A DNA stretch of 64,000 nucleotides, from NCBI RefSeq assembly GCF_000143415.4, contig NW_003314397.1, forward strand, positions 124,001 through 188,000, given 5' to 3'. Origin of the DNA: Selaginella moellendorffii. Taxonomy: Eukaryota > Plantae > Lycopodiophyta. The translations under genes were made by a program, and so were the position numbers. The notes beneath the pieces were generated by a model. That model worked only from the letters and a program-made list of their open reading frames with translations. It had not been told where the DNA came from and ran no database searches. This document shows, one piece after another, positions 12,719 through 29,151 of the stretch (position 1 is the first letter of the stretch; each line of letters starts with the position of its first letter).

Positions 12719-15128
12719 CTAGCATTTGTTTTCATAGTTCCTCGAGAGGAGGGCATCGAGAGAGCATCGAAATGTTTGACCCCGCCGACCAGAGGTCCTG
12801 GCCAGTGTTGACCCGGCTCGCGTGGATAATCGCCACCGCTGTAGCGAACGCTTGCAGCGCCGACAATGGCTCCTTGAATTTGACCGAGAAGAGACCGTTG
12901 CTCAATCCCACCAGCTCGAAGCAATCTCGATCGATTTGCCCCCGCCCACCTTGGATCTAAGTTGGATCAACAAGAACTTTGTCAAGAACAAACCAAAACC
13001 CGCGAAAAACTCTCACCTGGAGGGAGATGTCTAGCTTGCTGGATAGCGGGCTTCTAGCGTCCGGGTTTCTTCCAAGAGTGTGAAGCGCGCATCCCAGATC
13101 CCAGCCTCCACAATCGCATTTTCCCCTCCTCCACCGCTGGATCAAAGAACTCGGACCACCGGCACCACCACTACTGCTGCTATCACGGTCACCACCATCG
13201 CTGTTTGGACGATCAGGGAGCCCATGCTCGCCAACGGGAAGAATGGCCGTCACGCTCATGGCCGCGAATCCATGATCTGGAAGAGACTCCACGCTGGGAT
13301 TCCTGGAATGCGAGGAGCTCTTGAGGTGATGGTGATTAGTCGCTAGGCCTGGAAGAGTGACGACGATGGCTGCGAGCTCTTGCAATGGATTCATCCTCTT
13401 CTTGGCGGCTCGAGATCTCTCATCGGCCTCCATTTGCTTCCAGACCTCGCGAAGAATGTCCAGCTCTTGGTCGTCATCGTCGGCGATCTTTCCCCTGGTC
13501 GGGCTGGAGTTGTGTGACAAGCTCTTTTTCTTCGTGATCCTGGTAGAGCTCTTGGATGGATTGGACGAGGAGCTCGCCGAGGAGAGGCTGCTGCTCTGCC
13601 ACGATGAGAAGCTGAGACGATGATCGATGGACTGGTCACCTTGGCGCTGCTCCAGCGCCGACGATCTCTCGCAAACATCGCTTAGAACAAACTGGAGCTC
13701 CGCGATCGATGAAGGGCTCCTTCGCAATCTCATGCTTGCCACCAGCTCCGAGGACTCTTGCGACCTGGAATCTCCAGCGCTGGGCGACGCCCATGCCGGC
13801 CTCCACGAAGATCGTGCCTTCGCCCTAGAGGAGCTACGCTTCCACGAGAAGAAAGAACACACCTCTTCCTCTTGACCTTGTGGCTGCTCGTGCTCTTTCT
13901 CTCCTCGATCGTGCTGCTGCCGAGGCCTGGGCACCCGCGCGACGAGGCGCTCCTCGGATCCATCCACGAGATACGTGTAGCTATGGTGGTCGTGCCGGAT
14001 CGCGCAATGCAGGTGTGCCGAGGAAGAACTGTTACTGTTGTTGCTGCCAGCGCTACTGCTGCCGCCGCTGCTGCTCCTCTTCCGGATCAGCGCTCTAGGC
14101 AGAGCGTCCAAGAGAGTCTTGAGAAGATCGCCACCGCCACCATCGCTCCTCTCCTTCCTAGGGCTTGGGGAGAAGAAGCGCGACGAGGGTCGTGGCTGCT
14201 GCTCGCTAGGGCTGGATGTGAAGAGCAATCTCCTGGCGACGTGGCGCCGACGCTCACCGTCCTCCTCGTGGATCATCGTCTTTTTCTTCTTCTCCGTGAG
14301 AGATCGCATCAATGCCCAGGCCGGGTATCTGTCCGCCATAGCCTGGACCGGCGGCAATGGCGATGCTGGCCATGGCGGCCGATTGTCCTCTTCCTTGTCG
14401 CGATCTTCTACCTCCGGAGGAAGAACGAGCTGGCCGTGTACAAGCGTGTAATCCAGGAACCCACCTTGTTCTTCCACTTCTTCGCGTTCTTGAGCACGAT
14501 TGGAGGAGGTGGCTGTGCCGCCATCGCTGGTGGAGGAGAAGGACGAGGATTTCTTGGACGAGAAGATGGATGAGGTCTTGGACGAGAAGATGGATGAGGC
14601 CGCCTCCTGATCGCTGCTGCTGGATGGGCTTTGCTTCTTCTCGCCACGATCATCATCGTCCTTGCAGTCGCCATGACGAAGAAGAAGATCTTCTTCCAAA
14701 TCGCTAGCGCTGCTGGACGCGATGATGGGCTCCTCGGGCATAGCATCCAGGTAGACTCCTAGTCGCATCTGGAGGGCGTGCTTGCTCTCGCCGCTCCACA
14801 GGCTGCGGCGGACGGAGCTACACGGCTGCGGTGGCGGCGTTGGGCGTTCCAAGAGCGAGAGCGATCGCCGCAGCTTCACTCTCTCCCTGCTCCTGGGATC
14901 CTGGCTTTGCCGCCTCGATGGTGACGACGATGATCTCGGGAACTCTACGTCCCAGACGCGAGTGCTCGACACCGGCTGGATCAACTGGCGCTGCCGCAAA
15001 GGACTGAGCCACGGAGACGATGGTTTGGACGACGATTTCCTGGTCGACCACGGCTTGATGGTCCTGCTACTGTCACTGCCAAGATGAAAGCTACCACGCA
15101 AGCAGTCTTCGTCGGCCATAGCTGCCAT
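12719..15128 (-). CDS. DUF3527 domain protein (long exon plus last exon ~12719-12955)
   Basis: ELAAIVV, TAILPVGEHGLP, GPSSLIQRWR.GKCDCGGWDLGC, and last exon LSALQAFATAVAIIH. Confidence 0.85.
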
Positions 15129-18654: not shown

Positions 18655-19955
18655 GGGAAAGAGGGAAGAGCGCAGCAAAGGAAAGAAAACTGGCACATAA
18701 CAAAATCTGGTCTCAAGGCCATGATAAACCGCTATTCTCACTCTCAAATGTAATATAAGTTGCAAACAATGACTGGCTAATGTACAATTGCCAAAAGCAA
18801 GGTTTTCTTGTTTGGTGACAATGAACAGCAATTTCTTTGGTAAGATCTCATTGACAGCTTCAATGCCCTCGAAGAAACTACAGAGAAATCAGCAGAATTT
18901 TGTGATGGTTCTTTGTTGATACGAACAACCGCGTAGAACTTCACCAATCAAAGACCGATAATTCATTGTCCATTGACTATAGACATCTAACTGTGCGTCA
19001 GTCAAACGAAAAGTCCCGTGCCATTGACAGGGATTCAAAGTGTAAACTAGTGTTGCCAATCAATACTTCTCACTGCTAGATGAGGATCACGTTAAGGTTC
19101 CAACATGAGGGGCGGCAGGTAGATTGGTGAAGCCTAGGGCAGTGACAGAAGGCTCCGTGGCAGAAGACCTGGACGAGTTCAACAAACGAATGGCTCAAGA
19201 AATCATTAAAACAGCTTACTATAATCCGTCCTTTTTGGTGGGCACTGGGAAACTTTGTAAACAACTAATGAATGGATGATTACATCATGTTTTGATCGAA
19301 GTTATCAATCAAGTTCTCACAGTTTAAAGCATACCTCATTCAACCAGAAAGTGGTAGAGAATCTGAAAGGAGAGATCAGGAATGGTTTATGCGATTCTGT
19401 ACAGTAAGTTTACTCACTTCCAGCCATTTTCACAACGATCTGTAAAAGGAGGAAAACCAGCACCCCACTACAACTATGTTTATTTAGCCATATGTTTTTG
19501 TTATATTTAATATTATTTCATTAAATTTTAAAATAAAATATACTTCTGTACTCTAATTATATTGTTATGATTTAATAATCTAATTTCTGTTGTCTTTGGT
19601 TTGTGGCTGCTCTTTCTTGGGGCCACGTTGGCTGGCACGCAAGGAGAATGCTTGGAATTTTCAAGGGACAATACTGCAAATTAATAATTGTTTTAAATTT
19701 CTTAGGTAGGAGAACTCTAACAAAGGTTTCCGGGCAAAATTTTTGGGCATACAACCCAAGATTGTTGCAGCAGCATCCTAGAACATGCTTGGAGGTCTTG
19801 ACTGTTGCAGTGCAGGCTTGGACGACGTGATTATTGTAGGGCAGTTATGAACGACTTAGTCTTCGATGTTGACTTTCACGGCCTTAAAGCAGCGCTAGGG
19901 GCAGATCTGGGTCATCCTGTTTTCGCTGTGATCGGGTGTGATTTGTTTCTGGAGG

Positions 19956-20707
19956 ATGGCTCCACCAAGCAAGCAAGACATGCTCCAGACTTTGGACCGG
20001 GCGGCATTTGCTGGTAATGTGTATGTTATGATGCCTCAGGACAGGAATGATCTGAGGGACAACTTGAGCAAGTACTGGGACCATGTCGCTCAACACGACG
20101 GCTTGGTTTCCACCAAGAGTCGCTTAGAGGCCGAGAACGCCAAGCTGAACGCGCGCCTTATCGACTGCATCGAGGGAGGGAAGAAGAAGTGCGATTGCGA
20201 GAAGCTCACTGTCGACCTCAACAAGTGCAAGGAGGAGAAGAATCACGCCAAGGAGGATAAGAAGAAAGTCGAAGTCAAGTAAGTGCTGGTGTTTCTCTCC
20301 TGGATCCACTTCCTAACTCTCTCTGGGATGACTCCATCAGACTGGAGAAGTGCGAGAAAGGGCGAGAAGGGGACAGAACTAAGCTGAAAGAGTGTCAGAA
20401 TCGAGTGTGGTGCTTGGAGGAGGAAATCAAGCGCTTAAAGAACCAGCCCCCAAAGGTGATCCGAGTGAAGGAGTACATAACGCGATATGTGCCACAGTAC
20501 ATAACCAAGTATGTACCACAGTACATCAACCGTTACGTAACCCGGTATGTACCACAGTACATCACACGGTACGTAACTCAGTACGTACCGCAGTATGTAA
20601 CGCGGTATGTCACACAGTACGTGACCCAGCCCTGCTACAACTATGTCTATCGACCATGCTACAGTGCTTGTGCTTGGGGATGGAATCAATGTCGCAGATG
20701 GTGGTGA
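19956..20707 (+). CDS. Orphan protein: Cys-studded coiled coil + 13 x Y[VI][TPN][RQK] repeats + Cys/Trp tail (exons 19956-20278, 20341-20707; 229 aa)
   Basis: 62-nt gtaagt...catcag intron joins the two ORFs in phase; synonymous variation among the 12-bp units; start codon uncertain. Confidence 0.7.
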
Positions 20708-21011
20708 GAACCCTTTGCTGAAGTTGTGTGAACGTTTGATATGTCTATCTGGTTTGTTTGATAAAGACCTCTTCTATCTTTTGATCAACTTTTTCATTGT
20801 CTTCGAACAGTGAGAAAAATTGAAACAATCGGTGACTATGGTGTATTATGTACAGGGGAGAGGGAGAGCGAGAGCGAGAGAGAAAAGAGAGAAAGGGAGG
20901 CTCTCAACTTACAGCTTTCTCCAGTAGTGTTCTATGTACATCTACCTGTGCTTACTTTTGTACAGAGAGTGCTGCTTTTAGTTTTATGTACAATCGTCCA
21001 CCATGAACGCT

Positions 21012-22472
21012 TTACGCCTGCCAGACCCAGACCAGTGCAAGTCCATCACCAAAACAAAATCGCAAGTCCATCTCGTACCTCTTGCTGGCGCTTCTTCGAC
21101 GAACGGAACTTGCTGAGCTGGTCTCTCAGGCGCGCTGCATCGTTGTAGCGCTCCTCCACAGCTGCAACCATCATGCTACGGACCAGGACGAACTCTTCCG
21201 CCTCTGTACAAGTTCCAGATTCCGGCCTAGGGGAGAGAAACTAATCAGCTGCTTTGCTACCGGGAAAACTCGCGAGCGTTACCTGTCCAATGATAGTCCC
21301 TTGAAACCTTTTAGTGGCAGCCTCATGGCTTCCTTGACGATGCGAACACCATCGCAATAGGCAAGTTGCTTGTTTACTTGGATCGGAACCTGAGAAGAGA
21401 GAAGATATTTTTATTTTCTGTTGCCTTGATTTTTACCTGGCAACGAACTGCAAGATTTATAGCATCCGAAGGACGCACGTCGAGACTGCAAATCTTCTGA
21501 GTTCCATTCTCATCCTGCAAAAAGAAACAAACGAAACGCAACATCATCATCGATAGATTATACAAGTGACCCTGAAAATACCTTTGCAAGATACAGTCTT
21601 GCAAAATAAGCTTCGTGTACCCGTTTTGTGATGCGCACAAGCTTGGGCTGCACCACGTCGCTGTCAATCCAGAACAAGCAGAAAAAACCAGCAGAAACAT
21701 TCACGTACTTGATATCCCATCAGCTCAATCATATCTTTCATCACATTGTATACTGTTGGTCTGGCCTGTAACAAACACGGTATAGTTTTCCATCAAAAGG
21801 AAAATGCGAAACTTACAACTTGAATGTTTCGCACAGCTTCCATGAGCATCGCACAGGGTAACTCCACTGCAAGGAAACCAAGTCGCAAGAAAAAGCGTTA
21901 GACAGCTGTTGAAACTCAAAGATGGCGTGACTTACAAACGATTATTGGAAGAAGAAGGTTACTATCGTCGTCCATCTTGAGTACAATTGCCGGCTGTGGT
22001 GCGTAGTCTGGTAAGTGACCACCATCAGCATTGTTGTGCTCGCATTTTATGTGACGCCCATCTCGCATTGTGATCATGAAACCGTCAGCTCCACTCTTCA
22101 CCTCCACTAAAGAAGACACAAGGAAAGAAATCTCCATGAATCGATGTAAGAGAAGCTCTTGCAGAACAGCTTACCAGCTTCCAAAACAGTGGAGTTGATA
22201 TAGTTTTCATCGTCCTGGATAGAATCCTCCGCCAAGTTTCCATCGCTGTAGAAGCTGGAGCCGCATTTCACAGGCAGCCTAGCCGGGGAGAGGTGTCGAG
22301 ACGAGAATCCAGTGCAAGGGCGAGCTCCAAGTAGCTTTCTCTTAAGGATCCCAGCTTTCGCGATTCCCAACGCAGTGTTGGAGCAGCCAAGCGCGAGGTC
22401 CTGGTTTAGAGCGGCCAAGCCCTGGGCGTTGGAAGCAGCATTGATGACCGGAGCATTCAAGGTCACGGCCAT
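21012..22472 (-). CDS. BBD: Bifunctional nuclease (BBD/DUF151 DNase-RNase with UVR-like C-terminus), multi-exon
   Basis: EVKSGADGFMI.MRDGRH..C.HNN..GGHLPDYAPQPAIVLKM..LLLPIIV; DVRPSDAINLAVRCQV; AAVEERYNDAARLRDQL. Confidence 0.9.
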
Positions 22473-24387: not shown

Positions 24388-24402
24388 GCACCCCCTCCTC
24401 AA
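24388..24402 (-). promoter_or_regulatory. Polypurine tract
   Basis: Minus strand TTGAGGAGGGGGTGC immediately before the 3' LTR. Confidence 0.85.
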
Positions 24403-25868
24403 GAACGAGTGGAACGAGGATGTGAACGAGAACGAAGAGGAGGATGAGATGAGCGGCGAGGGATGGGAGATGGAGAAAAAGAATGAGGACTGGGACGAGA
24501 AGGATAGCGGCGGTGGAAGTCCTGAACAAGGTCAGGAGAATGAATCAGGTTGTCCGCAGGTTCCCAAGTGCGTTCCTCAGGTCCATAACCCTTCCAGTCC
24601 ACCAGATAGTAGAGTTTAGACCGTGAAATCTTGGAATCAAGGATGTCCTGAACCTCGTACTCAGACCCATCCTCGAGCTGCATTGGTGGAGGCGGAGGAA
24701 TGACCCGATTTGGAATAGGACTGGGAATATAAGGCTCAAGGAGAGAGGAGTGAAAAATGGGGTGAATTTGATATGAGGAGGGAAGTGCAAGGTGATAAGT
24801 GACAGGATTAATGATGGCAGTGATAGGGAAAGGACCAAGGCGTTTGAAATCGAGTTTTGAACAGGGCCTGGTGATGGAGATATTTCGCTTGAGGAGCCAG
24901 ACTTTATCCCCGATATTGTAAGGGGGACAATCTTGACGATGGACATTGGCAAATGTTTTATGAGATTCTTGAGCACGATGGAGGTGGACGGAGATGGAGT
25001 TGTGGATTTCTTGGAGGTTGGAGATAAATGCCTCAGAGCGGGGATTTGAACGAGAGGATTCAGATGGAGAAGGAAGTGAGAGATTGAATCGGGGATTTCG
25101 GCTAGAGTTCGCAAAGAAGGGGGAAACTCGAAAAGAGGAGTGAACAGAGTTGTTATAAGAGAACTCAGCAAGGGGAAGGATATCGAACCAGTTATCCTGA
25201 TGATAGTTGATGAAGCACCTCAAGAATTGTTCCAACGTCTGAATCGTTCGCTCGGATTGCCCATCAGTTTGAGGATGATATGCCAAAGAGAGGTTGGCCT
25301 TCACTCCAAGCAGCTGCAAAAACCGTTGCCAGAAATGAGAGATGAACTGAGGCCCCCGATCTAAAACCACATCTGTAGGAATCCCATGAAGTCGGAAAAT
25401 TTCCCTGAATACCAGTTTTGCCATGTCCTCGCCCGAAAACTCCTTGGTACATGGCAAGAAGTGCGCCATCTTTGTGAAGCGATCCACCACGACTAAAATG
25501 TCGTTGAAGCCTCCAGAACTCGGAAGATCACTCAAGAAATCCATGGAGATGGATTCCCAAGGACCTGAAGGGACTGGAAGGGAACGAAGCAAACCTGAAG
25601 GAAGGTGGCGAGGTACCTTATTCCGGGCACAAGTGTCACAGGAGGTAACAAAAGCTTTGATGTAGTCGTCCATGTGAGGCCACCAAAAGTCCCGTGCAAC
25701 TAGCTCATAGGTTTTCGCAATGCCGAAGTGACCAGCAGTCGGGCTATCGTGGCACGCCATCAGGACCAACCTTCGAGCATCACCTTCAGGAACGTAAAGC
25801 TGCTCCCCACGGTACAATAAGCCATCTAAGAACTCGAACTCGTCAAATCGCCGGCAGTCGGGAGTCAC
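24399..25868 (-). CDS. Integrase (HHCC, DDE) + chromodomain, separated from RT-RH by a frameshift
   Basis: HD...GHFG..CDTC; SMDF, DRGPQF, GQSER; GPF; YEVQDILDSK..YYLVDWKGY. Confidence 0.9.
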   Translation of the reverse strand: MTPDCRRFDEFEFLDGLLYRGEQLYVPEGDARRLVLMACHDSPTAGHFGIAKTYELVARDFWWPHMDDYIKAFVTSCDTCARNKVPRHLPSGLLRSLPVPSGPWESISMDFLSDLPSSGGFNDILVVVDRFTKMAHFLPCTKEFSGEDMAKLVFREIFRLHGIPTDVVLDRGPQFISHFWQRFLQLLGVKANLSLAYHPQTDGQSERTIQTLEQFLRCFINYHQDNWFDILPLAEFSYNNSVHSSFRVSPFFANSSRNPRFNLSLPSPSESSRSNPRSEAFISNLQEIHNSISVHLHRAQESHKTFANVHRQDCPPYNIGDKVWLLKRNISITRPCSKLDFKRLGPFPITAIINPVTYHLALPSSYQIHPIFHSSLLEPYIPSPIPNRVIPPPPPMQLEDGSEYEVQDILDSKISRSKLYYLVDWKGYGPEERTWEPADNLIHSPDLVQDFHRRYPSRPSPHSFSPSPIPRRSSHPPLRSRSHPRSTRS

Positions 25869-28156
25869 TGGGTGTCCAGCCTGAAGATGGGGAAAATGTC
25901 GCTAGCGAGATCATCGGATTGAAGATCGTTTCTGATTGCATCCATCAAGGAGGAGTCCTGAGGGGCCAGGGAAATTGCCATAACTTGAAGCCGATCAGGA
26001 CCGAGGATAACTTGATCCTGTTGATCGAAGGCAGGATTACCAGGCCTGAGACTGAGATAGGAGCGCCTTGAAAGAGCATCAGGAAGGCCTTGAAACTTTC
26101 CAGGTCTGTACTTGATAACAAAGTCAAACCGACTCAGGAATTGTGCCCACCTTGCTTGACGATGGCTTAAAACTCGGGAAGTGGCAAAGTACTCGAGATT
26201 TTTGTGATCCGTCCAGACTGTTGTTTGATGGCTCGCCCCCTCCAAGAAACGGCGCCACTCTCCAAAGGAATCCACGATGGCAAGGAGCTCATTGTCGTGG
26301 ATTTCGTAATTGATCTCCGCAGGTTGGAATTTCCGAGAATGGAAAGCGACCGGATGAAGTTTGTGATCCGCTCCGAGTTGAGACAGCACAACACCAATGG
26401 CAAAGTCGGAGGCGTCAGCCTCGATGAAGAAAGGTTGTGAGGAATCAGCATGGATCAAGACAGGAGCAGAACTGAAGGCCGCCTTGAGTGTGTCGAAGGC
26501 CTGCTGGGCAGCAGCAGACCAAGAGAAGGGAACATCCTTGCGAGTGAAATATGTGAGAGGAAGGACAATGTCAGAGTAGTGATCAATGAATTTGCGGTAG
26601 AAGTTGGCGAAGCCGAGGAAAACCTGAACGTCCGACATTGATTGTGGAAGCTCCCATTCGAGAATAGTCTTGACTTTGGCAGGATCCATCGTGATACCTT
26701 CAGGAGTGACAATGTACCCAAGGAACTCCACAGACTGTTGATCAAAGGAACATTTCTCAAGCTTCGCGTATAGGCCGTGTTCTCGCAGCTTCGCTAGCAC
26801 CTTGCATACATGTTCGTCATGCTCCTCCTGAGTTTTTGAGTAGATGAGGATGTCATCGAGGTAGACGATCACCATCTGATCAAGAAACTCCCGAAAGACG
26901 TCATTCGCCATGTGTTGGAAAACTGCTGAAGCATTTGTCAAGCCAAATGGCATGACAGTGTACTCGAAGTGGCCATAGCGGGTTCGGAACGCAGTCTTCC
27001 ATTCATCACCAGGCCAGATCCGGATCAGGTTGTATGCTCCACGGAGGTCGATCTTGGTGAAGAAGCGGGCACCGCCGAGGCGTTCCAACAGGTCCGAGAT
27101 CAGGGGAAGCGGATAACGGTTCCGAACAGTCACCTTGTTCAAACCTCGGTAGTCGATGACTAGCCGCAAGCTCCCATCCTTCTTCTTGACAAAGAAGACA
27201 GGCGCTCCAGCTGGGGACTGCGAATGCTGAATGTAGCCCGAGGCAAGGTTCTCATCCACGTACTCTTTGAGGGCCTTAAGCTCGAACGGGGATAACCTGT
27301 AGATAGGCCCCCACGGAGGTGACGCTCCTTCCTGTAAATCAATGGGACAATCATAAGGCCGATGAACAGGCAGTACACTAGCTTTTTTCTTGTCAAACAC
27401 ATCCCCAAAATCATGATACTTCTCAGGAAGATTGACAGGAGAAACATGCAAAGCAAAAAGAAAAAGAGGTTCTTTATGAAGGAGTTCTTTCATAGTGATT
27501 GTGGAGATAGGAGGAGGCGTACGACTAAATGGAATGATGAGACGAGGATACGGTCCAGTGTAAGATGGAAGAGAGGAAAAAGAAGAGGGTGAAAACTTTC
27601 TAGAGTTAGGAACAAAACCCCGATTTGAGTTTAGGGAACTTTTCCTGATTCGGACTCGATGAACAGCAGGGGAAGCCGTGGGAGAGATGAGCTGTAATTC
27701 CTTCCAATAGATCTGAGGCTGATGTAGTTGGAACCAAGGAAGACCGAGCACCACAGAGGAGGACTTGCTGTTGATGATGTTGAAGGCGATATCGGTGACG
27801 GTGGACCCGATGTGTACTCGAATGGGCAACATTTCCCTAAGTCCAGAAGATGGAGACACAAAATGCCCGCCGATGCCTTCAACCCTCAAATCCCGTATGG
27901 TAGGAGAAAGAGGAACGTGATGTCGGGCAGCAAAGTCCGTGTCCATGAAGCAGGAAGTTGCACCCGAGTCCAATAACGCCAGAGCCTTGAGTCCTGATTG
28001 TCCGGTGAAAGAAAGGAGACATGGGACGCGGAAGTTGCGGGAATTGGTGGTGGCTTTGATGAAAGGTGGTGAGGAGCTTGATAAAGAAGAAAAGTGATTT
28101 TTATTCAGGGAGTCCAAACAGACAGCTCCTACTCTGTTTGGACAGGGTCGTTTCCC
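25865..28156 (-). CDS. pol: Pol: aspartic protease, reverse transcriptase, RNase H (expressed by -1 frameshift from gag)
   Basis: LLDSGAT; YLDDILIYS; EADASDFAIG, ELLAIV, TDHKNL, DALSR. Confidence 0.93.
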   Translation of the reverse strand, partial: GKRPCPNRVGAVCLDSLNKNHFSSLSSSSPPFIKATTNSRNFRVPCLLSFTGQSGLKALALLDSGATSCFMDTDFAARHHVPLSPTIRDLRVEGIGGHFVSPSSGLREMLPIRVHIGSTVTDIAFNIINSKSSSVVLGLPWFQLHQPQIYWKELQLISPTASPAVHRVRIRKSSLNSNRGFVPNSRKFSPSSFSSLPSYTGPYPRLIIPFSRTPPPISTITMKELLHKEPLFLFALHVSPVNLPEKYHDFGDVFDKKKASVLPVHRPYDCPIDLQEGASPPWGPIYRLSPFELKALKEYVDENLASGYIQHSQSPAGAPVFFVKKKDGSLRLVIDYRGLNKVTVRNRYPLPLISDLLERLGGARFFTKIDLRGAYNLIRIWPGDEWKTAFRTRYGHFEYTVMPFGLTNASAVFQHMANDVFREFLDQMVIVYLDDILIYSKTQEEHDEHVCKVLAKLREHGLYAKLEKCSFDQQSVEFLGYIVTPEGITMDPAKVKTILEWELPQSMSDVQVFLGFANFYRKFIDHYSDIVLPLTYFTRKDVPFSWSAAAQQAFDTLKAAFSSAPVLIHADSSQPFFIEADASDFAIGVVLSQLGADHKLHPVAFHSRKFQPAEINYEIHDNELLAIVDSFGEWRRFLEGASHQTTVWTDHKNLEYFATSRVLSHRQARWAQFLSRFDFVIKYRPGKFQGLPDALSRRSYLSLRPGNPAFDQQDQVILGPDRLQVMAISLAPQDSSLMDAIRNDLQSDDLASDIFPIFRLDTQ
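28112..28156 (-). promoter_or_regulatory. -1 programmed ribosomal frameshift signal
   Basis: G GGA AAC heptamer in gag phase, 6-nt spacer, perfect 11-bp stem GTCCAAACAGA/TCTGTTTGGAC; pol lies in the -1 frame. Confidence 0.85.
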
Positions 28157-29151
28157 GACTGCAATAGAGGTGGACTTTGAGGCAGAGTGAACTCGAGCAG
28201 TTGAGGAGGCTTCTTGGGACATACAGCTGCTTTGTGCTTAGGATCAGCACAATAGAGGCAAAGATTATGAGATATTTGACGTTGCTTCTCAGCAGGACTC
28301 AACTTCCCTCTAATGAGTCGGGGAGTACCAGAAATATCCATCGGAACCGGAGCAGTAGGTTCAGGAGTATGCCCCAAAGACTCAAGCTGGGATTCCTGAG
28401 TCTGGGACGGAAAAACAGCGGCGCGGCGACTTTCCTGACGACGTTCAAAGAGACGATTGTCACATCGAACAGCTTTGTTGATGGCATCCGACAGGTCCTT
28501 GGGATCCTCCATGGTGAGCAACAAATCCTTGACACCGTTGTTGAGGCCGAAACGAAATTGGTCAATCAGGGCCTGCTCATCCCACTGAGTGTCCAAAGCA
28601 AGGAGTTGGAACTCTGCAGTGTAGATCGAGGCAGGACGAGACCCCTGAGAGAGACGTCTCATCTTTGTGGTAGTAGCCTGAACCCGATCCGTCTCGCCAA
28701 AACATGCTTCGAGCTTCTCTTTGAACAATTGAAGATCCATCAGCTCTGGAACCACGACCCCTTTCATGCTCTTCTCCAGAAGAGGAGAAAACCATGACAA
28801 AGCTGCACCTTCGAGCAACATCCCAATCGCGCCGATTTGAGATTCAAGAGTAGGGTACCGCCGATGTTGAAGTGCGAAGATCAACTCCATCTGGTTCAGG
28901 AATCCGCGAAGCTCCGAACGCTTGCCTGAAAATTTCGCCAGGAAGCTCACCTTCGGTTCAGGAACTTTGCTGGATCCTTGAGCCGAAAGTGAAGCAAGCT
29001 CCTGCTGCATGCGAAGAAGGGTTGCCTTCAGCTCGGTATTCTCAGACTGGATTTTTGCAAGGACTTCAGCAAAGAAATCAGGATGGCTTAGAGACTCCAT
29101 TGGCAAGAAGAAAGAAAAAAGGGGGAAAAAAAGGCAAAGGTAATCAAACAA
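28129..29151 (-). CDS. gag: Gag (retrotransposon capsid + CCHC zinc knuckle); true start probably MESLSH at ~29100
   Basis: FSGKRSELRGFL, LSQGSRPASIYTAEF, PMDI, CLYCADPKHKAAVCP. Confidence 0.9.
   Translation of the reverse strand: MFDYLCLFFPLFSFFLPMESLSHPDFFAEVLAKIQSENTELKATLLRMQQELASLSAQGSSKVPEPKVSFLAKFSGKRSELRGFLNQMELIFALQHRRYPTLESQIGAIGMLLEGAALSWFSPLLEKSMKGVVVPELMDLQLFKEKLEACFGETDRVQATTTKMRRLSQGSRPASIYTAEFQLLALDTQWDEQALIDQFRFGLNNGVKDLLLTMEDPKDLSDAINKAVRCDNRLFERRQESRRAAVFPSQTQESQLESLGHTPEPTAPVPMDISGTPRLIRGKLSPAEKQRQISHNLCLYCADPKHKAAVCPKKPPQLLEFTLPQSPPLLQSGNDPVQTE

Follow-up and report, generated by a model that had tools for sequence, protein, structure and literature searches.

A tyrosine-repeat protein of Selaginella moellendorffii and its moss and hornwort homologues: a small family with a cysteine-studded coiled coil and a possible scaffold function

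Alveolin-repeat (IMCp) and epiplastin proteins occur in alveolates, euglenids, glaucophytes, and cryptophytes. We know of no epiplast in land plants and, as far as we are aware, plants are thought to lack cytoskeletal polymers of the intermediate-filament or epiplast type. Epiplastins are defined by a medial low-complexity domain enriched in acid-base dyads, and the searches made in the same paper found none in green algae (PMC6212826). Some alveolins depend on cysteine motifs near the ends of the chain (PMC5223771), and an engineered "cysteine zipper" shows that chains become linked by disulfides when rings of Cys occupy the core of a coiled coil (PMC4476739). Here, we describe a gene of the lycophyte Selaginella moellendorffii that encodes a run of tyrosine-based tetrapeptides behind a cysteine-studded coiled coil. 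It occupies positions 19956 to 20707 on the forward strand of a stretch of 64,000 nucleotides (nt) from contig NW_003314397.1, which we refer to as the window and to which all coordinates below refer. Judging from the sequences retrieved, the gene belongs to a small family that is so far found only in a lycophyte, in mosses (mainly Sphagnum), and in a hornwort. We tentatively read its product as a cytosolic, self-assembling scaffold that could be locked through its thiols, and assign a probability of about 0.4 to this reading.

The gene consists of two exons on the + strand. Exon 1 (20278 being its last position; 19956..20278) encodes residues 1-107 and the first two bases of codon 108, whereas exon 2 (20341..20707) provides the third base of this codon (AA/A, resulting in K108) and residues 109-229, followed by a TGA stop codon at 20705-20707. 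The intron between them (20279..20340, +) is 62 nt long, has the borders GTAAGT...CAG, and is in phase 2. The whole codons of both exons match exactly residues 1-107 and 109-229 of a S. moellendorffii protein of 229 amino acids (aa) (P0007; SELMODRAFT_430686, XP_002992471.1, LOC9662379 isoform X1), in agreement with an earlier sequence-only reading of this locus, which had proposed a spliced 229-aa protein. LOC9662379 is a real protein-coding gene that is publicly annotated and uncharacterised. The moss homologues described below have no intron and run colinearly through both Selaginella exons and across their junction, and the splice model is therefore supported independently of RNA data. RefSeq contains two isoforms of this gene, X1 and X2. 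Isoform X2 (P0006, 185 aa) uses an alternative GT donor inside the repeat array (ACACG/GTACGT, 20566..20574, +), is the same as P0007 through residue 184, and ends after a single T. The donor of isoform X2 is made by the repeat unit itself, and units of the TACGTA type double as cryptic splice donors.

The same reading had considered the protein an orphan, a view that did not withstand database searches. A word search with exon 2 retrieved Sphagnum magellanicum CY35_14G107000 (P0001, 184 aa), with which exon 2 aligned end to end at 45% identity (BLASTP E = 6e-25); exon 1 aligned with the N-terminus of the same protein (BLASTP E = 4e-06). We carried out a profile search of 1.84 billion representative proteins, as well as searches with P0001 and with family alignments. 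Together, these searches returned 35 matches at E <= 0.001, about a dozen of which are true family members. These include the Selaginella cluster, several proteins of Sphagnum type encoded on Logan contigs and on metagenome contigs of peat type (among them P0002, P0003/P0008, P0005, and P0009), two transcripts assembled with Trinity from the hornwort Nothoceros aenigmaticus (P0010 and P0040), Ceratodon purpureus M758_9G150200 (P0022), and a protein from a Logan contig (P0035/P0044). The Sphagnum-type members also comprise five N-terminal paralogues or fragments (P0011, P0017, P0018, P0020, and P0025). As Trinity transcripts, the Nothoceros members are expressed. The profile search of these 1.84 billion proteins yielded no member from seed plants, ferns, liverworts, or algae, an absence that carries limited weight given how short, repetitive, and quickly evolving the proteins are.

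Alignment of the members revealed a four-module design which, together with the recognition of the family and of a coiled coil with Cys at position "d," is new here. The N-terminal module (residues 1-45; 19956..20090, +) starts with M-A-P-P-S-K-Q-D-M-L and extends to Y-W-D, and it aligns with the N-terminal ends of its counterparts from Sphagnum, metagenome mosses, and Nothoceros. Throughout the family, this head is helical, carries M-x-P-x-[ST]-K-x-x-M at its very start and Y-W-D some 25-40 residues further in, and the W and D of the latter motif are more than 90% conserved. It is followed by a coiled-coil region (residues 46-142; 20091..20443, +) that is interrupted by the intron and is supported by AlphaFold2 helices and by the phasing of its cysteines. 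At the other end of this region, a Q-P-P-K hinge (20444..20455, +) separates the coil from the repeats; both of its Pro residues are more than 90% conserved, and the family version reads [RQ]-P-P-[QKR], followed by units of the form [YWF]-[VIR]-[TP]-[QRKE]. The protein closes with a basic tail rich in Cys, Trp, and Tyr (residues 205-229; 20630..20704, +) that ends in C-R-R-W-W and whose conservation extends to Sphagnum, Nothoceros, and the mosses of the metagenomes. The consensus at the carboxyl end is Y-V-x-Q-P-x-Y-x-A-x-N-x-C-x-N-Y-C-x-R-x-W-W, with three to five tail Cys per member.

Several sequences depart from this design. On chromosome 14 of S. magellanicum there are two consecutively numbered paralogues, CY35_14G106900 and CY35_14G107000 (also locus L009), and several more (P0017, P0018, P0020, and P0025) are encoded on contigs that probably derive from peat moss. 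P0018, P0020, and P0025 have kept the YWD head and the coiled coil but neither the Cys/Trp tail nor the tetrapeptide array. P0017, with 83 aa, may be only a fragment. These head-only paralogues and the several copies in peat mosses indicate that the head is a separable module and that the family has expanded in peat mosses. The annotated Ceratodon protein P0022 (L008:5891-6480 on CM026442.1) is truncated to 152 aa. An N-terminal module (PPSKDEML...YWDKVLAAPPDCSAC) is present just upstream of it, in another frame and without an ATG, and a stop precedes a degenerate tail (ICNRGW). By its sequence, this copy looks decayed, being either that or mis-assembled.

The Cys-studded coiled coil noted in the sequence-only reading was borne out by structure prediction and by comparison of the homologues. 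Two AlphaFold2 runs with family alignments gave predicted local distance difference test (pLDDT) values of 64 and 48, and the models were confident for the helices only; in the Selaginella protein, these comprise residues 27-73 and 81-141 with pLDDT values of 70-83. Its helical region contains seven Cys, at residues 71, 79, 81, 91, 112, 126, and 132. One shared heptad position is occupied by all four coil Cys of P0001, by seven of nine in P0009, and by six of nine in P0008, and a Leu or Ile three residues before the Cys places Leu at "a" and Cys at "d." Three of the seven Selaginella residues (C91, C112, and C126) are in this phase, and a fourth is one position off. Cysteines at a fixed position of the heptad core would also suit a metal-binding or redox-sensing protein. 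In such a protein, Cu(I), Zn, or Cd would be bound, or oxidation sensed, by Cys layers of a two- or three-stranded coil, by the C-terminal Cys cluster, and by a C-x-x-C that some members have after YWD, and the repeats would play a secondary role. Nothoceros, Ceratodon, and the Logan member have the motif D-C-S-A-C behind YWD, the number of tail Cys is in keeping with such a function, and designed coiled coils with core Cys are known to bind heavy metals. However, the number and position of the coil Cys vary among members, with only three in phase in Selaginella and few in P0044, and this explanation does not account for the array and the tail, the most conserved and longest part of the protein. 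We consider it rather unlikely.

The thirteen in-register Y[VI]xx units that had been recognised from the sequence were recovered as 12-nt units at 20474..20629 (+). Their order is YITR, YVPQ, YITK, YVPQ, YINR, YVTR, YVPQ, YITR, YVTQ, YVPQ, YVTR, YVTQ, and YVTQ. A degenerate two-unit pattern had 12 matches, all of them at the repeat locus, compared to 0.02 expected by chance, and the periods of 24, 36, and 60 nt reported by Tandem Repeats Finder correspond to the higher-order spacing of the YVPQ units. Codon position 2 shows no variation in the first two columns of the unit and hardly any in column 3, and in column 4 it is split between G and A (Arg versus Gln/Lys). Codon position 3 is the most variable, as illustrated by Tyr, which is encoded eight times by TAC and five times by TAT; Val is encoded by GTA, GTG, or GTC, Ile by ATA or ATC, Thr by all four of its codons, and Arg by CGA, CGT, or CGG. 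Residues 150-206, which cover the repeat region, include 7 K+R and a single D+E. Across species, the pattern of an aromatic residue, V, I, or R, then T or P, and finally Q, R, K, or E is kept, while the sequence and number of units change. The Selaginella array is the most regular one; YVTR and WRTE alternate in Sphagnum, and YVTK and WRTE do so in Nothoceros.

We compared the window gene with its copy on the second haplotype (L006, scaffold GL377670.1, protein P0004). The two copies differ in 7 of 752 nt, have no indels, an identical intron, and the same number of repeats. Six of the seven substitutions are at third codon positions and silent, and the remaining one results in K92R. In contrast, the flanks are rich in indels, and the 1.5 kb upstream contain 2.2% mismatches and 108 gap columns. 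As the differences within the gene are mostly silent and free of indels, the frame, the number of units, and the protein are under constraint. The comparison thus supports selection at the protein level, as had been deduced earlier from synonymous variation among the units, and the architecture is kept in the mosses and the hornwort. Open frames across the array are also found in another phase and on the minus strand, which could be taken to mean that the locus only looks coding because of a 12-nt tandem repeat in the DNA and yields no functional protein. Such additional frames are, as usual in tandem repeats, by-products of the repeat. A chance open reading frame (ORF) in a DNA repeat does not account for the six silent third-position differences at an unchanged repeat number, nor for intronless moss homologues and hornwort transcripts that share the N-terminus, hinge, repeats, and tail. 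We rejected this possibility, which is scarcely credible.

No signal peptide or membrane segment was detected in the protein, the maximal Kyte-Doolittle mean over 19 residues being 0.57 and thus below 1. The start codon is conserved, and upstream of it both Selaginella copies, Sphagnum, and two moss contigs from metagenomes have in-frame stops. A hidden signal-peptide exon was rejected on the grounds that such stops lie just upstream of the ATG at all loci checked. The sequence-only reading had likewise seen no signal peptide. In the absence of a signal peptide and a membrane segment, the protein is made in the cytosol.

This location bears on two of the three functions that had been suggested for the repeats. 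One was a dityrosine-cross-linked scaffold, i.e., a secreted wall or spore-coat protein cross-linked by peroxidase, for which the 17 Tyr in the C-terminal 80 residues would provide ample substrate. Our data gave no support to this suggestion. An extracellular peroxidase route is improbable for a protein without a signal peptide or hydrophobic segment, the same N-terminus preceded by stops is present in all homologues, and Ser-Pro/Hyp glycomodules are missing; we judge this alternative very unlikely. The other was a repetitive precursor of ribosomal, Tyr-cross-linked cyclic peptides of the burpitide or dikaritin type, with the N-terminus as leader and the tetrapeptides as cores. Conserved flanks, variable units, and a Tyr in every unit fit such a precursor, but the lack of a signal peptide at a conserved start codon does not. 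Furthermore, the six frames of the 64-kb window contain no CH-x(8-12)-CH BURP motif, and no cyclase-like neighbour was found, the nearby ORFs corresponding to a bifunctional-nuclease (BFN) domain and a faint MOV-10 Ig-like match. The units abut without spacer, recognition, or cleavage site, and neither a Cys-lined coil of approximately 100 residues nor a conserved C-terminal tail is a feature of known plant precursors. A peptide precursor is accordingly disfavoured and, in our estimate, highly improbable.

A match to a characterised family that would explain the repeat was found neither in Pfam nor by a profile search of the Protein Data Bank (PDB) nor in the literature. Pfam searches with both exons and five homologues (P0001-P0005) produced coiled-coil noise only, and the PDB sequence-profile search returned generic coiled coils with a best E value of 0.012. 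There was no usable match in the ESM Atlas and no match in Rfam for the region from 15 to 25 kb. Precomputed annotation assigns the C-terminal region of outer dense fibre protein 2 (ODF2_C, PF27605) to the allelic copy P0004, where the match is marked weak, and to none of the homologues. ODF2 and the Selaginella protein are both coiled-coil proteins, and the match most likely reflects generic coiled-coil similarity. A relationship to ODF2 was set aside as unlikely since the match is weak, confined to one allele, and absent from the homologues.

The explanation that we favour is the cytosolic scaffold. According to this explanation, the coiled coil would form parallel oligomers, and its ladder of core Cys would lock them by inter-chain disulfides or hold (soft) metal ions. 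The Pro-Pro hinge would terminate the helix, and the array, with its beta-branched and aromatic residues and a Pro every 8-12 residues, would probably pair as short beta strands with the arrays of neighbouring oligomers. The Cys/Arg/Trp tail could cross-link the assembly or anchor it to a membrane, for example by S-acylation. What results would be a scaffold, insoluble or elastic, that resembles alveolins and articulins by design rather than by homology. Tyr, Val, Ile, and Thr are strong beta formers and Pro excludes helix; going by established propensities, the composition of the repeat domain (Y, V, I, T, and P) speaks for beta or turn structure. Given its richness in beta-branched and aromatic residues and its interruption by Pro every two or three units, the array is unlikely to be a helix.

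A number of observations weigh against a scaffold of this kind. AlphaFold2 gave pLDDT values of <50 for the repeats and tail of both the Selaginella and the Nothoceros protein and drew them, nominally, as helix rather than as beta strands. The phasing of the Cys is weaker in Selaginella than in the moss proteins. Disulfide locking in the reducing cytosol would need an oxidising step, and S-acylation of the tail is pure inference. IMCp was not matched by the plant members, either by the exons at E <= 0.01 or by P0001-P0005 at E <= 10 (the best 25 families being listed for P0001 and P0003), and an hhalign comparison of the plant alignment with the alveolin-type protein P0016 returned a probability of 2.5%. 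Literature searches with gene and protein identifiers and motif strings revealed no paper that names the genes or the motif. Finally, a family of patchy appearance with a decayed-looking copy in Ceratodon fits a dispensable or fast-evolving function.

The failure of AlphaFold2 to find a fold for the repeat region, together with the predicted oligomerising coil at the N-terminus, could also point to a condensate scaffold, in which aromatic residues and Arg/Gln act as "stickers," the coil supplies multivalency, and the protein nucleates a compartment, liquid or gel-like, instead of a fibre. An aromatic residue at every fourth position and frequent Arg, Lys, or Gln are kept across species while the units change, as expected for stickers. 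On the other hand, the spacers are beta-branched (V, I, and T) and not the Gly/Ser typical of liquid-forming low-complexity domains, and fixation, either covalent or to a membrane, is suggested by the conservation of the Cys ladder and of the Cys/Trp tail. We regard a condensate as doubtful.

A bolder version of the scaffold reading is that, with this family, a counterpart of the beta-repeat proteins of the protist membrane skeleton (alveolin/articulin type) has been recognised for the first time in land plants. The family would form a cytoskeletal polymer that is nucleated by a coiled coil, locked by thiols, and possibly S-acylated. Only the lineages with biflagellate swimming sperm, namely bryophytes and lycophytes, would have retained it, and euphyllophytes would have lost it; its role would be to give the spermatozoid, or some other specialised cell, its shape or stiffness. 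This is a long shot. In a conserved cytosolic protein, a natural Cys-lined coil joined to a highly regular array of aromatic tetrapeptides would amount to a new building principle, and the family would be a candidate for a polymer of the intermediate-filament or epiplast type in land plants that diverged early. It also makes a clean test case for how selection maintains a four-residue repeat despite turnover of the units. Should the family turn out to be linked to motile sperm, spores, or desiccation, it would be a trait module lost en route to seed plants; if dispensable, it would be one more lineage-restricted low-complexity protein. Its design is unusual, conserved, and readily testable.

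The surroundings of the gene contain a 29-nt direct repeat in two copies at 19787-19844, about 110 nt upstream of the ATG, and a (GA)n/GAGAGC microsatellite at 20858-20894, about 150 nt past the stop codon. The nearest genes are the BFN domain gene (21374-22472) and a Ty3-type retroelement with protease, reverse transcriptase (RT), and RNase H (24399-29151), and a DUF3527 protein is encoded at 12957-15128. All three lie on the - strand, and nothing about any of them hints at a functional connection with the tyrosine-repeat protein. Other genes in the window encode PPR, U-box/ARM, and F-box-LRR proteins, which, like the Ty3-type element, accords with the window being spikemoss and not human DNA.

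The high-molecular-weight (HMW) subunits of glutenin and other elastomeric repeat proteins possess a central array of short repeats rich in Tyr, Gln, Pro, and Thr and non-repetitive ends with Cys that cross-link the polymer, and the plant family likewise combines an array with flanking modules. Glutenins differ in lacking a coiled coil, in having Gly-rich repeats of six and nine residues, and in being seed storage proteins that carry signal peptides and are secreted. We saw no sequence similarity between glutenins and the family, for which no aimed comparison was made. For the coil, the closest parallels are engineered cysteine zippers (PMC4476739) and designed metal-binding coils with a Cys core, in which, as here, successive core positions of a parallel coil are Cys. 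Whereas those coils are man-made, the plant pattern is natural, conserved, and cytosolic.

For the array, the comparison is with alveolins, articulins, and epiplastins. Apart from the plant proteins, the profile searches matched translated microsatellites and alveolin-type proteins. The latter include one eukaryotic protein of 964 aa (P0016) and four bacterial ones (P0013, P0023, P0034, and P0036), of which P0016, P0023, P0034, and P0036 match IMCp (PF12314) in Pfam. These five bacterial and protist proteins repeat a module composed of a coiled coil, (G/P)-P-K, and four-periodic VEKI/VDRP units, and alveolin-like repeats are thus present in bacteria. P0034 also matches helix-hairpin-helix models of Pfam, P0023 begins with a hydrophobic stretch, and the C-terminal segments of P0013 and P0023 look similar by eye. 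In P0016, P0013, and P0023, a coiled-coil segment ends with (G/P)-P-(K/Q) directly before four-periodic repeats of V, I, E, K, and P, and the plant junctions have a like layout (...N-Q-P-P-K-V-I-R... in Selaginella and ...N-R-P-P-Q-Y-I-T... in Sphagnum). The Selaginella repeats, however, are based on Tyr, Thr, and Gln, have one acidic residue, and lack the acid-base dyads of epiplastins, whereas the array of a hornwort member contains some K-E dyads. Homology to alveolins was rejected in view of the hhalign probability of 2.5%, the absence of an IMCp match in the plant members, and the lack of acid-base dyads in the Selaginella array. Of the three options put forward in the sequence-only reading, a beta-rich, self-assembling protein reminiscent of articulins and epiplastins is consequently the best, but it stands as an analogy and not as homology. 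What the plant family shares with alveolins, articulins, and epiplasmins is a layout of head, low-complexity repeat, and tail, and with alveolin-type repeats a richness in Val and Ile, the presence of Pro, and a four-residue rhythm; by analogy only, it may work like these proteins without being a member of their families.

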